Below, piece after piece: positions 42,365-63,986 of a stretch of DNA of 64,000 bases. Origin of the DNA: Mizuhopecten yessoensis (Eukaryota); contig NW_018408386.1 in assembly GCF_002113885.1 (NCBI RefSeq), forward strand, positions 13,957 through 77,956, given 5' to 3'. Under the pieces are notes generated by a model that saw nothing but the letters and a program-made list of their open reading frames with translations, was not told the origin of the DNA and searched no databases. Numbering within the stretch: position 1 is the stretch's first letter; each line of letters opens with the position of its first letter. A program made the position numbers and the translations under genes.

Positions 42365-42433
42365 ATGCAGCCAGTAACAGTCCTAAAGAAGTGTTTGTTG
42401 TCTGTGAAGATTCCATTTGGAGCGTCGTCATGA
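42365..42433 (+). promoter_or_regulatory. uORF (22 aa) whose TGA overlaps the main ATG (ATGA)
   Basis: ATG 42365 gives MQPVTVLKKCLLSVKIPFGASS*; stop TGA 42431-42433 overlaps ATG 42430-42432; lies inside the exon starting 42355. Confidence 0.55.
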
Positions 42434-42586
42434 ACTGGCTGCTGGCAGCGGCTGGATTGTTAACAATCTACACGTTACGTACGGTGCTTTGTCATACCAT
42501 TACCACCGAGACGGGAGCAGGTTACCATTGCATGAACGTTACACAGGCCTTCCACCAACGAGGCACATCTGACGCGGACCAAACAG
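42430..42586 (+). CDS. Coding exon 1 of uncharacterised Cys-rich multi-pass membrane (receptor-like) protein; signal peptide
   Basis: Acceptor TTTCAG ends 42354; in-frame TAA at 42358; ATG at 42430 (gtcATGa). Translation MNWLLAAAGLLTIYTLRTVLC-HTITTETGAGYHCMNVTQAFHQRGTSDADQT has a hydrophobic N-terminus. Donor CAG|GTAGTA at 42587; 157 nt, phase 1, matches the next exon. Confidence 0.75.
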
Positions 42587-43624
42587 GTAGTAGATAAACA
42601 GTATTCAATCGGTTCGTTCACGTGGTCACTCCTNTTCGAGAGAAATTATGACTAAGGAATATTTGAAATTTGGGTTTGTTTTAAGGATGCTGTACCATGT
42701 ATTCTCGAAGGAGTAGCCAACGAACTAATTATTCAACTCCCAACACCCCTAATGCTTTATAAATCTCGTCTGTTCCTCTTCCTCGTCACAACACGTTCAG
42801 AATCTGTATGCTGTTTTCACATATTTAGTGTCTGTAGTTCTCAAATTTTCAATCTGTGTGCTGTTTTCACTCTGGGAACCAAATGAACATTTCATTCAGT
42901 AGGCCCAGTTTAGATTATTTTAAATATGTTTTATTACAAAAGATACTAGGCTATATGAATGATTGGGCTCATTTTTTTTTTACCAAAATACAATTCATTT
43001 CAATTCAACTTTATAGCATTTGCATCTAAACAAAGTTACACTTTATGGATCGAACAGCAAATTAACACATTTTTTTTATATTAGCAAACAGGTAAGAACT
43101 ATGCTCTGAATATAAAAATAATATTGAACTATTAAAGCACTTTGCAAGCCCGCGTTCAAGTTCAAAAGAGTTTTTAATGAAGAGACCCAAATCGCGCAAA
43201 CGTTTTGGTTCATTTAATGAAAGTATCCTCTGTAAGTTTTTCACGTCATTTAAAGATGAAATTGATTTATTTTTTTCGAAAAATATTTTTCTTGTGTCAT
43301 ATTTTGTACGTACAATAAAAAAATGTACCTCGTCTTCTAGTGTTTACGGTTCTCACAAAGATGAAGTTACCTAGTAATTATTTTTAGGCTAGCTCAGCTT
43401 ATTTCAATTTCAAGAATATGGGAAAAAAATATAGGTAAACGCAATGGATCTGTCTCGGGGATAGCCTATAACATTGGGATTTGCTCTTGTGCCCTCTATT
43501 ATGGGACACAAAAGCGACCAAAACAAATCTGCTGCATCCATTGCAATATTTGGGATCTTTCTTTCTCCTAGCGTCTTGCTTGGCAACACCTCACTTTTGG
43601 CTTTAATGTTGATGTTTTAAGGCA

Positions 43625-43916
43625 ATGGGTTCTGTCCCCAGGCTGGGACATACCTAAGTCCTTAAAAATGGCAGTTGTTAAAACTGGTTCACACGTTGTC
43701 AGTATAATGTGACCGGGTGGAATGCTGTGCTGGGTGCCTTCGGCAGGGTATTTCAATGAGATAGCACTATAAAGTCGGCATCAGATCCGCGCAATAACAA
43801 GGAGGCAAATACACTAACATAAGCTGTCTCCGGCACACGTACACATTATGTACACTTACACAACACAAATGGAGGCACGTCAAAAAATGACCTCAGCTGT
43901 TAATAGGACGTTAAAC
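43625..43916 (+). mobile_element. SINE with Meta-domain-like core (5' truncated/degenerate)
   Basis: Degenerate B box GGTTCTGTCCC; core GTCAGTATAATGTGACCGGGTGG...CTTCGGCAG...TTCAATGAGATAGCACTATAAA; tail AAATGACCTCAGCTGTTAATAGGACGTTAAAC. Confidence 0.7.
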
Positions 43917-43920
43917 TATA

Positions 43921-44385
43921 TTTTTTTTTTTAAGTTCAAGTTCTTTATTAACTTTGAGTCTTGCGACTCATCAGTGTAACACATATACATGATATATATA
44001 TATATATATATACTTTCTCATAACATTGACAAATATCGAAAATACTAATAAATACACAGACGAGACAAAACACTCGGAGAGCATAACTACTTATGTTAAT
44101 AAAGCTCTTCTTGAATTTGCAGCTTTAATGTATTTGGCCAATTTTGCTAATTCATTTGTGTTTTGTCCGTTAAATAACTGAATTAATTTAAACATGCTCG
44201 GTTTTTTACAATAGTACTTTTTTAAAATTTTCTCACGTAAATCAGAATAACAGGGGCATTTAAGAATAAAATGAAATTCATCTTCGACATCATCTATATC
44301 AAAAGCGGTACAGATTCTTAAAAGTCGCGGAATATTTTGATAACGACCTTTCTCTACATTTAAATTATGGGCTGAAAGCCGAATT
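43921..44385 (-). mobile_element. 5'-truncated LINE (RTE-X-like) 3' end
   Basis: Minus-strand frame 44384-44091: IRLSAHNLNVEKGRYQNIPRLLRICTAFDIDDVEDEFHFILKCPCYSDLREK...ALLT* (C-terminal Zn-knuckle-like motif of ORF2). 3'UTR hairpin TGAGTC-TTGC-GACTCA, then AATAAA-GAACTTGAACTT and poly(A). Confidence 0.9.
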
Positions 44386-60988: not shown

Positions 60989-61101
60989 ATTGTCTGTTCC
61001 CGAAGCTGTCCACCAAGCTGAGTTATTACCTGACCTGGATGTCGTCCTTCCTACCCCCAGTGATCATCATTGTCTTCATGGCGTTTGTGGACAAAAGTAT
61101 G
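60989..61101 (+). CDS. Coding exon 5: TM3
   Basis: TTCTACAG| acceptor, ATG|GTAAGA donor; 113 nt, phase 1-0. NCLFPKLSTKLSYYLTWMSSFLPPVIIIVFMAFVDKSM. Confidence 0.92.
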
Positions 61102-61506
61102 GTAAGATTGTTTAAAGATCACCGATAACCATGATTTGTCTGGTAGATTGTAACATGGTAACACTTATTGCGATGTTTTAGAAAAACAAAGAATATGATG
61201 TGTGTTACAAGGTTTCAGTGATTGTAATGTTTTGACGAAGTCACAATTATTCTGATGCTTGTGGTAAAATCATAATCATTGCGATGTTTGCGATAATGTC
61301 GCAATGTTTCCGAGTTTCGAGAGGATCCAGGTCTATGATTGCGATGTATATATGGACCTATGTAGGTATGTGACGCGGTCGTCTGTAGACACGAAACAAG
61401 TCTCAATGATATGACGTTGGATGAAGACGTGTCTGAATTAAATATGCAGAAGCAGTACGAACAGGGTTGCTCTAGCGCTACGTTTCCGTTTCCATTTCCA
61501 TCGCAG

Positions 61507-61668
61507 GGGTTCTGGTTGTCTCAGGAGAAAGACCGGAAGCGGAAGGAGAGACAGTGGCGACGCCGATCTATGTTACGGAGGATAACGTTCTATTTACTGG
61601 TAGCTACATATCTGCCCGTCACGCTGTTTTCCGCCCAAAGTAATAGCTGTTCCCACTCTGCCTACAAG
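61507..61668 (+). CDS. Coding exon 6: basic cytosolic loop + TM4
   Basis: TCGCAG| acceptor, AAG|GTAACT donor; 162 nt, phase 0-0. GFWLSQEKDRKRKERQWRRRSMLRRITFYLLVATYLPVTLFSAQSNSCSHSAYK (overlaps track ORF 61411..61686). Confidence 0.92.
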
Positions 61669-63790
61669 GTAACTAACCCAGAGTAATAGTTGTTCACACT
61701 CCGCCTACAAGGTAACTAGCTCAAAGAAATAGTTGTTCCCTCTCCGCCTACAAGGTAACTGACCCAGAGTAATACTTGTTCCTATTCCGCCTACAAGGTA
61801 ACTAACCCAGAGTAATAGTTGTTCCTATTCCGCCTACAAGGTAACTAACCCAGAGTAATGGTTGTTCCCAATCCTCCTACAAGGTACCTAACCCAGAGTA
61901 ATAGTAGTTCCCATACCGCCTACAAGGTAACTAACCCAGAGTTATAGTCGTTCCCATTCCGCATACAAGGTAACTAACCCAGAGTAATAGTTGTTCCTAT
62001 TCCGCCTACAAGGTAACTAACCCAGAGTTATAGTCGTTCCCATTCCGCATACAAGGTAACTAACCCAGAGTAATACTTGTTCTTATTCCGCCTACAAGGT
62101 AACTAACCCAGAGTTATAGTTGTTCTTATTCTGCCTACAAGGTAACTAACCCAGAGTAATAGTTGTTCCCAATCCTCCTACAAGGTAACTAACCCAGAGT
62201 AATAGTTGTTCTTATTCCGCCTACAAGGTAACTATCCCAGAGTAATAGTTGTTCCTATTCCGCCTACAAGGTAACTGACCCAGAGTAATACTTGTTCCTA
62301 TTCCGCCTACAAGGTAACTTACCCAGAGTAATAGTTGTTACTATTCCGCCTACAAGGTAACTAACCCAGAGTTATAGTTGTCCTTATTCTGCCTACAAGG
62401 TAACTAACCCAGAGTAATAGTTGTTACTATTCCGCCTACAAGGTAACTAACCCAGAGTAATAGTTGTTACTATTCCGCCTACAAGGTAACTAACCCAGAG
62501 TAATAGTTGTTACTATTCCGCCTACAAGGTAACTAACCCAGAGTTATAGTCGTTCCCATTCCGCATACAAGGTAACTAACACAGAGTAATACTTGTTCTT
62601 ATTCCGCCTACAAGGTAACTAACACAGAGTTATAGTTGTTCTTATTCTGCCTACAAGGTAACTATCCCAGAGTAATAGTTGTTCCCAATCCTCCTACAAG
62701 GTAACTAACCCAGAGTAATAGTTGTTACTATTCCGCCTACAAGGTAACTAACCCAGAGTAATTGTTGTTCACACTCGGCCTACAGGGTAACTAACACAGA
62801 GTAATAGTTGTTCCCATTCCGCCTACAAGCTAACTAACCCAGAGTAATAGTTGTTCCCATTCCGCATACAAGGTAACTAACCCAGACTAATACTTGTTCT
62901 TATTCCGCCTACAAGGTAACTAACACAGAGTTATAGTTGTTCTTATTCTGCCTACAAGGTAACTAACCCAGAGTAATAGTTGTTCACACTCGGCCTACAG
63001 GGTAACTAACCCAGAGTAATAGTTGTTCCCGTTCCGCCTACAAGGTAACTAACCCAGAGTAATTGTTGTTCACACTCGGCCTACAGGGTAACTAACCCAG
63101 AGTAATAGTTGTTCCCGTTCCGCCTACAAGGTAACTAACCCAGAGTAATAGTTGTTCCTATTCCGCCTACAAGGTAACTGACCCAGAGTAATACTTGTTC
63201 CTATTCCGCCTACAAGGTAACTTACCCAGAGTAATAGTTGTTCCTATTCCGCCTACAAGGTAACTAACCCAGAGTTATAGTCGTTCCCACTCCGCCTACA
63301 AAATACCTAACCCAGAGTTAAAGATGTTCCCACTCCGCCTACAAGGTAACTTACCCAGAGTTATAGTTGTTCCCACTCCGCCTACAAGGTAACTAACCCA
63401 AAGTAATAGCTGTTCACTTTCCACCTACAAAGTACACTTTCGATCTAGTACCTAACCAAGAGTAAAAGTAGTTCCCACTCCGCCTACAAAGTACCTTAAC
63501 CAGAGTTATAGATGTTCCCACTCCGCCTACAAGGTAACTAAGCCAACGTTATAGCTGTTCATTTTCCGCCTACATGGTAACTAACCCAAAGTAGTAGTTG
63601 GTCACTTTCCGCCTACAGGGTACGGTTTCGATGTAGTACCTAACGTAGAGTGAAAGCTGTTCCAACTCCGCCTACAAGGTCACACAACGGCTTACATGGA
63701 ATGTAAACCAGTAACAGCTGTTCCCTTTTCGCCTCAGAATTGGTATCTTATATTAATTACCCTTAGTAATTGCTGTTCCCACTCTGCCAA
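61634..63790 (+). repeat. 43-bp minisatellite (~50 copies) = exon-6 3' end + splice donor
   Basis: First unit CCCAAAGTAATAGCTGTTCCCACTCTGCCTACAAG|GTAACTAA spans the exon/intron junction; period 43 (61661, 61704...). Confidence 0.97.
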
Positions 63791-63911
63791 ATAAAACAAA
63801 AAGTAATTGATAAGATATTTTAACTATAGGACTGCGTGCATAGTGACATCTTCCTCATATGTCCTTGTTGTAATATGACTTTTGATTGTTGTTCTATTTG
63901 TGATCCTGTAG

Positions 63912-63986
63912 GTGTTTGTGATTGACACATCAGAGAATGTCTTCCTACACGACCAGAGTCTGGATTGTGACACGTTTGATATGTCG
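63912..63986 (+). CDS. Coding exon 7 (gene continues beyond window)
   Basis: CCTGTAG| acceptor, TCG|GTAAGT donor; 75 nt, phase 0-0. VFVIDTSENVFLHDQSLDCDTFDMS. Confidence 0.9.

Follow-up and report, generated by a model that had tools for sequence, protein, structure and literature searches.

Do seven short coding stretches scattered through a repeat-rich region of a scallop genome form a genuine gene, and if so, what might a multi-pass membrane protein with so small an ectodomain do? The question arises in a stretch of 64,000 nucleotides from Mizuhopecten yessoensis (hereafter the window; assembly GCF_002113885.1, contig NW_018408386.1, positions 13,957 to 77,956 of the forward strand), in which an earlier note, made from the letters alone, had joined seven exons into a hidden gene for a cysteine-rich, receptor-like protein. 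We find that window positions 42430-63986 very probably represent the 5' part of a genuine annotated gene, LOC110459576, that encodes a short-ectodomain member of a family characterized by a DUF7630 module and a multi-pass membrane core. We also consider it likely that this gene and family assignment, combined with a more tentatively proposed sensor- or channel-like core, is the best overall explanation of the locus.

The seven coding exons lie on the plus strand, and their internal borders are all of the AG...GT type, with pyrimidine-rich acceptors and good donors. Joined in silico, with phases of 1, 1, 0, 1, 0, 0 and 0, they yield 903 nucleotides that specify 301 amino acids without a single stop codon. 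This translation, which is the one the earlier note had assembled, is identical, letter for letter, to residues 1-301 of XP_021367581.1 (also OWF43554.1 and A0A210Q492_MIZYE), a protein of 515 residues listed as "uncharacterized protein LOC110459576". The exons, with the transmembrane helices (TM) and residues that each specifies, are as follows.

Exon 1, 42430-42586, plus strand: first in-frame ATG, signal-peptide-like residues 1-21, start of the ectodomain and an NVT sequon at N36; leaves in phase 1.
Exon 2, 48602-48730, plus strand: first six cysteines of the membrane-proximal DUF7630-like module and an NNT sequon at N72.
Exon 3, 53047-53180, plus strand: end of the cysteine module (C104, C107) and TM1 at about residues 110-131.
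Exon 4, 60360-60492, plus strand: TM2 with K142-I143..F147.Q149, then W161-P162 and a further helix at residues 163-180.
Exon 5, 60989-61101, plus strand: invariant C186 (N-C-L-x-P) and TM3 at about residues 197-219.
Exon 6, 61507-61668, plus strand: basic loop (12 lysines or arginines, residues 220-247), TM4 with Y257-x-P259, and invariant C270.
Exon 7, 63912-63986, plus strand: loop with L288-x-D290-x-S292-xx-C295.

Each of the motifs that had been picked out by eye is present in the RefSeq protein: the signal-peptide-like start, CVPC...AEGSYGISCEKC...YHRVGNHCVRC, KIKIVLHFCQ...ITWP, NC, the basic loop, YLP and LHDQSLDC. As had also been recognized, the protein is partial in the window, which ends after exon 7 of 13. 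We mapped the rest of the gene on the next 20 kb of the contig, 3' of the window, where exons 8-13 occupy window-equivalent positions 64858-79000 (contig 78814-92956) and the stop codon lies at 78998-79000 (contig 92954-92956), approximately 15 kb past the window end. The complete coding sequence comprises 13 GT-AG exons and 1548 nucleotides, and its translation gives all 515 residues followed by a stop. Since the RefSeq model matches the seven-exon join exactly, the gene is hidden from the open reading frame (ORF) track only; the bacterial-style ORF list of the window shows its exons just as fragments, amid many spurious ORFs from tandem repeats. LOC110459576 is already annotated, yet unstudied, and it adds little to genome annotation; the description of its product as uncharacterized and without a gene symbol holds, the protein having no named function.

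Exon-by-exon identification led to the same protein type. Exon 4 (44 residues), compared with 1.84 billion representative proteins, matched a Pecten maximus protein of 516 residues with 89 % identity (E 2.4e-15) at residues 139-182 of the latter, which is the position predicted by the seven-exon model. A protein search with this Pecten maximus sequence (LOC117325043) returned Ylistrum balloti LOC132550287 (520 residues) together with LOC110459576, and XP_069127842.1 of Argopecten irradians (527 residues) is a further orthologue with the same short N-terminus. The orthologues thus measure 515-527 residues, and those of Pecten maximus and Ylistrum balloti are 77-79 % identical to the LOC110459576 protein. 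Among the scallop proteins, identity reaches 81-87 % in the cysteine module and 79-82 % in the membrane core, compared with 48-57 % in the signal peptide and 64-69 % in the C-terminal tail; judged from these alignments, the core and cysteine module are better kept than the ends, as expected of a constrained protein.

To which family does the protein belong? DUF7630 (PF24633) matches the exon 2 translation with 16.8 bits (E 0.0074), under its gathering cut-off of 27 bits, and the Pecten maximus protein with 9.7 bits; it gives no match at E <= 0.01 on full-length XP_021367581.1, and 30-35 bits in the relatives. Eight positions of the module (C63, C69, C75, G81, C84, C87, C104 and C107) are nearly invariant and stand in register with DUF7630 members that score above threshold, directly before TM1. 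When a scallop-only profile was aligned with a profile of cnidarian-type relatives, hhalign returned a probability of 99.3 % (E 1.6e-20); the aligned region spans 358 columns and scallop residues 59-430. Residues W161, P162, C186, R246, L253, Y257, C270, S292, C295, P318, E346, W355, E356, R362, K363 and P400 of the core are invariant; K142-I143..F147.Q149, N178, P259, D290 and Y348 likewise fall in invariant or nearly invariant columns; and the relatives have a further signature in common, YExYK..FWE..RK. The multi-pass family that the earlier note had proposed from its motif order is therefore real, as KIxxxxxQ..WP, Y-x-P and LxDxxxxC are among the (nearly) invariant columns.

The relatives were drawn from several sources. 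Two ENA proteins of 560 residues, P0007 and P0008, have the same motif order (P0007 with E 2.2e-6 against 5.8e9 sequences); their own relatives, P0009-P0019, include an Acropora muricata protein, P0017, and PF24633 is precomputed on five of them. A metagenome scan contributed 39 loci, most of which align to residues ~72-400 in a single uninterrupted frame, and 43 of the 49 members of the family alignment carry a DUF7630 match. The DUF7630 multi-pass proteins of cnidarians, sponges, algae and Dictyostelium (for example P0017 and, by name transfer, DDB_G0281931) resemble the scallop protein in having the eight-cysteine module directly before TM1 and a collinear core with KIxxxxxQ..WP, N-x(7)-C, Y-x-P, LxDxSxxC and YExYK..FWE..RK. 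The scallop protein is 20-25 % identical to them but lacks their leucine-rich repeat (LRR), ephrin-receptor-like and other N-terminal modules, their extra cysteine pairs in the TM4-TM5 loop, and the long acidic or serine-rich loop before the YExYK helix. Two further candidates from the representative search, P0001 and P0003, were judged to be repeat or low-complexity matches, P0003 being visibly made of tandem repeats and P0001 matching as 22 short stretches. Exon 6 on its own retrieved nothing usable from the ESM Atlas, a word-indexed protein search with alignment A1 added nothing, and scans of viral contigs with profiles A2 and A6 gave pattern matches of which none was confirmed. A BFVD search produced one weak Megaviridae match (E 0.025), and the Atlas mentions Nucleocytoviricota.

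That the scallop protein retains every family-invariant residue bears on a further explanation, namely that the locus is decaying or non-functional, either a pseudogene or an annotation artefact. Large tandem arrays in introns 2, 3 and 6, one of which repeats the donor of exon 6 some 42 times, might invite such a view; however, the 515-codon frame is intact across all 13 GT-AG exons and, as set out above, the protein is well conserved between genera, more so in the core than in the tails. We regard a non-functional locus as highly improbable.

The full-length architecture of the family is best seen in L060 (metagenome contig Ga0187760_1013193, 405-3899), a complete intron-less gene for a protein of ~1130 residues and the best available reference for it. 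Its product consists, in order, of a signal peptide, LRRNT, LRRs, an ephrin-receptor-like module, DUF7630 (34.5 bits) and the core, such that ~700 residues precede the core. Another metagenomic locus, L034, specifies LRR and ephrin-receptor-like modules, and P0017 carries LRR and/or ephrin-receptor-like modules, in agreement with the earlier expectation that relatives would have larger ectodomains before the same core. The ESM Atlas places XP_021367581.1, by features (0.93-0.95) and by structure (template-modelling score, TM-score, 0.6-0.7), among eukaryotic clusters whose members come from sponges, cnidarians, green algae, haptophytes, Perkinsozoa and giant viruses and whose domains are DUF7630, Ephrin_rec_like, LRR, Chlam_PMP or PF06011 "TRP". 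We treat these neighbours as leads, consistent with the alignments. As judged from such sequence comparisons, the DUF7630/core family is eukaryote-wide and experimentally uncharacterized, with its core behind interchangeable adhesion or ligand-binding modules, namely LRR and ephrin-receptor-like ones and, among the Atlas neighbours, Chlamydia-PMP repeats. We found no literature on DUF7630, on the LOC and XP identifiers or on DDB_G0281931.

Large modular ectodomains of the LRR, ephrin-receptor-like or PMP kind are absent from the scallop protein, in which 87 residues separate the signal peptide from TM1, close to the ~90 residues first estimated. Such ectodomains are probably not universal in the family, given that Atlas clusters of 541-650 residues exist. 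Could the scallop gene model instead be incomplete at its 5' end, with a large ectodomain encoded by missed exons in intron 1 or upstream? Most of the other cnidarian-type open frames contain no signal peptide and are thus probably preceded by further exons, and intron 1 of LOC110459576 is 6 kb long (it contains a single N, at position 42634). Nevertheless, exon 1 begins with the first ATG of its open frame, at 42430, followed by a signal-peptide-like sequence, and tblastn of XP_021367581.1 against the exon 1 region aligns at 100 % across residues 1-52. Moreover, the short N-terminus is common to the orthologues of all four genera (Mizuhopecten, Pecten, Ylistrum and Argopecten) and to one transcript-derived contig. 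The latter, a Logan contig of 1719 nucleotides, encodes P0006, a protein of 397 residues that clusters with the Argopecten protein at 90 %. P0006 is collinear throughout the stretch that begins with the signal peptide and ends with exon 9, and no additional sequence separates exon 1 from exon 2. Because it is too short for anything else, this contig can only be spliced RNA, and it supports junctions 1-8 at the transcript level in a sister genus. Finally, an ectodomain-like exon was sought in introns 1-2 and in the 12 kb upstream by tblastn. The queries, namely the first 200 residues of P0010 and P0014 and the LRR and ephrin-like regions of L060, L034 and P0017, yielded nothing better than E 0.35. 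Taken together, these results make missed ectodomain exons very unlikely, and we retain the short ectodomain as real.

P0006 departs from the RefSeq proteins exactly at the exon 9 donor (after ...TETNVI; exon 9/10 junction, window-equivalent 65647) and stops 26 residues further on, as would follow from intron retention or from a short isoform without the last three or four helices. The Argopecten orthologue XP_069127842.1 is named by NCBI [quoted passage not shown] even though it is collinear with the LRR-free scallop orthologues; this misleading annotation presumably derives from a Dictyostelium entry via the common membrane core, and the name is a hint that the family extends to Amoebozoa. 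No paralogue was found in the scallop genome (988-Mb assembly, 82,659 contigs) with exon 4, exon 6, P0007, PF24633, PF06011 or profile A2 as queries, the exon-wise search being insensitive; within that scope, the gene appears to be single-copy.

Hydropathy of the scallop protein reveals a signal peptide, eight strong hydrophobic helices and one or two weaker ones. Combining this profile with the basic loop and with the helices of two AlphaFold2 models, one of the scallop protein and one of a cnidarian-type homologue, we infer a signal peptide, an 87-residue ectodomain, a core of approximately nine helices with its N-terminus outside and its C-terminus inside, and an acidic cytoplasmic tail. 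The ectodomain would be little more than one eight-cysteine DUF7630-like module with two N-glycosylation sequons (N36 and N72). With the N-terminus outside, the basic loop at residues 220-247, in which 12 of 28 residues are lysine or arginine, would be cytoplasmic, and the invariant C186, C270 and C295 would all lie outside, where they could form disulfides. The helix with YExYK..FWE..RK, if membrane-spanning, would bring the count to nine helices followed by the cytoplasmic acidic tail. In the homologue model (DUF7630 plus core, L028:2914-4233, built from 49 sequences), residues ~150-320 reach a predicted local distance difference test score (pLDDT) of 70-89, and the model contains two beta hairpins in the cysteine module, one in the cysteine-rich TM4-TM5 loop, and about ten long helices.

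What might such a core be related to? PF06011, named "TRP ion channel" in Pfam after transient receptor potential (TRP) channels, is a fungal family that includes Flc1-3 of S. cerevisiae, Pkd2 of S. pombe and TrpR of A. nidulans. Matches to it in the relatives score 18-19 bits (E ~1e-3) among the stretches listed; in L060, L030 and P0017, the YExYK..FWE helix and the helices that follow align to PF06011 positions 273-413 of 426, and Atlas clusters pair Ephrin_rec_like with PF06011. XP_021367581.1 and the Pecten maximus protein have no PF06011 match, and a genome search with PF06011 returned nothing at the LOC110459576 locus. In the fungal PF06011 proteins and the scallop protein alike, a signal peptide and an extracellular domain precede the roughly nine helices of the core, but the scallop protein has no ML-like domain. 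The consistency of the PF06011 matches among the relatives suggests a distant kinship between the DUF7630 family and PF06011, which at the level of sequence we consider likely rather than shown. One PF06011 member, S. pombe Pkd2, is reported to become permeable to Ca2+ in an in vitro reconstitution when the membrane is stretched (PMC9727806). The cysteine repeat modular proteins (CRMPs) of alveolates (Toxoplasma, Plasmodium and Tetrahymena) combine ephrin-receptor-like or EGF modules with a conserved core of 5-9 helices, which PANTHER labels "GPCR-like" (PMC9670195), and, as sensors at the cell surface, set off the exocytosis of rhoptries or mucocysts (PMC9670195, PMC9815656). They are far larger than the scallop protein, contain Kringle, MAR or lectin domains, and are likened to it here by their described architecture only.

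A conserved core behind interchangeable modules is the pattern of a receptor, in which the ectodomain recognizes and the core transduces or conducts. In the DUF7630 family, the core would be the signalling or conducting unit, the polar residues K142, Q149, E346, W355, E356, R362 and K363, along with C186, C270 and C295, would form and brace a polar pathway or coupling surface, and the ectodomains would gate the core upon binding of a ligand or contact with a surface. In the scallop lineage, the sensing modules would have been lost or never gained. Because the invariant core and the cysteine module are kept there in the absence of a recognition module, we tentatively favour, by analogy, a core whose gating cue is not a protein ligand but stretch or ions, as reported for Pkd2, or one that works with a partner. 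The scallop protein may then be a ligand-independent core, for example one gated by stretch or ions like the distantly similar fungal Pkd2/Flc proteins, or a subunit whose partner does the recognizing.

Several findings count against this interpretation of the locus. With regard to the family, neither the exon translations nor the full-length proteins have any Pfam match above cut-off, and the PF06011 matches, present in 7 of 49 family members, are all sub-threshold (best E 3.5e-4; cut-off 28.5 bits). Orthologues were seen in scallops only, in word-indexed and short-query searches whose sensitivity may set this limit, such that absence from other bilaterians is not established. With regard to structure, the AlphaFold2 model of the scallop protein (16 sequences) was unusable at a pLDDT of 45 and was discarded, and that of the cnidarian-type homologue is of moderate quality only (pLDDT 65, predicted TM-score 0.61). 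A Foldseek search of the homologue model against 350,542 PDB chains gave a best E of 0.2 and TM-scores <= 0.24, its GPCR and transporter entries resembling noise; VIA-align against 48,161 representative chains recovered helical hairpins only, with Z <= 7.4, under the tool's helical noise level; and a profile search of PDB sequences found nothing with E < 0.5. The idea of a pore or polar pathway, moreover, is not structure-based.

The same searches speak to whether the protein could be a divergent true TRP or polycystin channel (six helices and a pore loop, tetrameric) or a seven-helix G-protein-coupled receptor (GPCR), as the earlier label "GPCR-like/TRP-like" might imply. That label agrees with the Pfam name of PF06011, with its weak matches in relatives and Atlas neighbours, and with the PANTHER label of the architecturally similar CRMPs, but the structure searches lend it no fold support. 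The scallop protein has eight to ten hydrophobic helices rather than six or seven, GPCR entries in the Foldseek results have TM-scores <= 0.2, and what the protein has in common with canonical TRP/polycystin channels and GPCRs is the plan of an ectodomain on a helical membrane core. As far as the models allow, the core appears to have no solved relative detectable here, and neither a six-helix TRP nor a seven-helix GPCR fold finds support; we give such an identity hardly any credence.

The main rival to a signalling core retains the same gene and family but casts the core as an internal-membrane transporter or carrier, in line with the proposal that yeast Flc1-3 are flavin carriers of the endoplasmic reticulum; the ectodomain would then be a lumenal stub that has no role in ligand binding. 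PF06011 includes the Flc proteins, which are linked to flavin transport and calcium homeostasis (PMC9600462). A bundle of about nine helices with conserved charged residues inside them suits carriers as well as channels, and the top Foldseek entries are transporters (PNS1/CTL1 and NRAMP), yet these matches are weak, with E >= 0.2 and TM-scores <= 0.2. The interchangeable LRR, ephrin-like and PMP ectodomains of the family, by contrast, suggest recognition at the cell surface, and the link to PF06011 is itself sub-threshold. We consider a carrier unlikely, though by some distance the most serious competitor to a sensor- or channel-like core.

A broader possibility, which we hold to be rather doubtful, is that the core of about nine helices is an unrecognized pan-eukaryotic signalling or conducting module, itself without a solved structure, that unites the DUF7630 proteins of Metazoa and Dictyostelium, algal ephrin-like "TRP C-terminal" proteins, fungal Flc/Pkd2 proteins and possibly CRMPs, with the scallop protein as a natural core-only version that constraint has preserved in at least four pectinid genera. 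If so, the core would work without a large sensing ectodomain, and at 515 residues the protein would be a small, tractable target for structure determination and electrophysiology. LOC110459576 offers an entry point to a large, uncharacterized family of surface proteins of eukaryotes, whose possible distant kin include the calcium-related Pkd2/Flc proteins of fungi and the CRMP invasion sensors of apicomplexans. As a naturally minimal conserved member, its product may be the easiest to express, to solve by cryo-electron microscopy and to test for conductance, and it raises the question of why a bilaterian lineage retains the core but not the sensing modules.

Tandem repeats are a feature of the locus in their own right. 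A 43-bp array at 61634-63677 starts inside exon 6, with 41.9 copies to position 63434 and degenerate copies thereafter. Its first unit consists of the last 35 nucleotides of exon 6 and the first 8 of intron 6 and hence spans the exon 6 donor, so that a donor-like CAAG/GTAACT is repeated approximately 42 times; splicing from any of the later copies would change the reading frame, since 43 is not a multiple of 3. Intron 2 contains a 24-bp array of 51 copies (51164-52386). The 24-bp arrays of intron 3 (overall 53217-59579) begin 37 nucleotides past the exon 3 donor and comprise ~190 copies at 53217-57891 and further blocks at 58302-58968 and 59275-59579. The arrays of both introns give rise to long spurious ORFs on both strands and to a strong skew of C over G. 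Past the window, the 10-kb intron 9 contains a long tandem array (contig 79604-81851) with open frames of 60-230 residues on both strands. Upstream of the gene, satellite-like arrays occupy window positions 12000-16000 and 16830-24490, one of them GC-rich (0.53-0.56) and the other AT-rich, the latter yielding a spurious ORF of 2139 residues on the minus strand.

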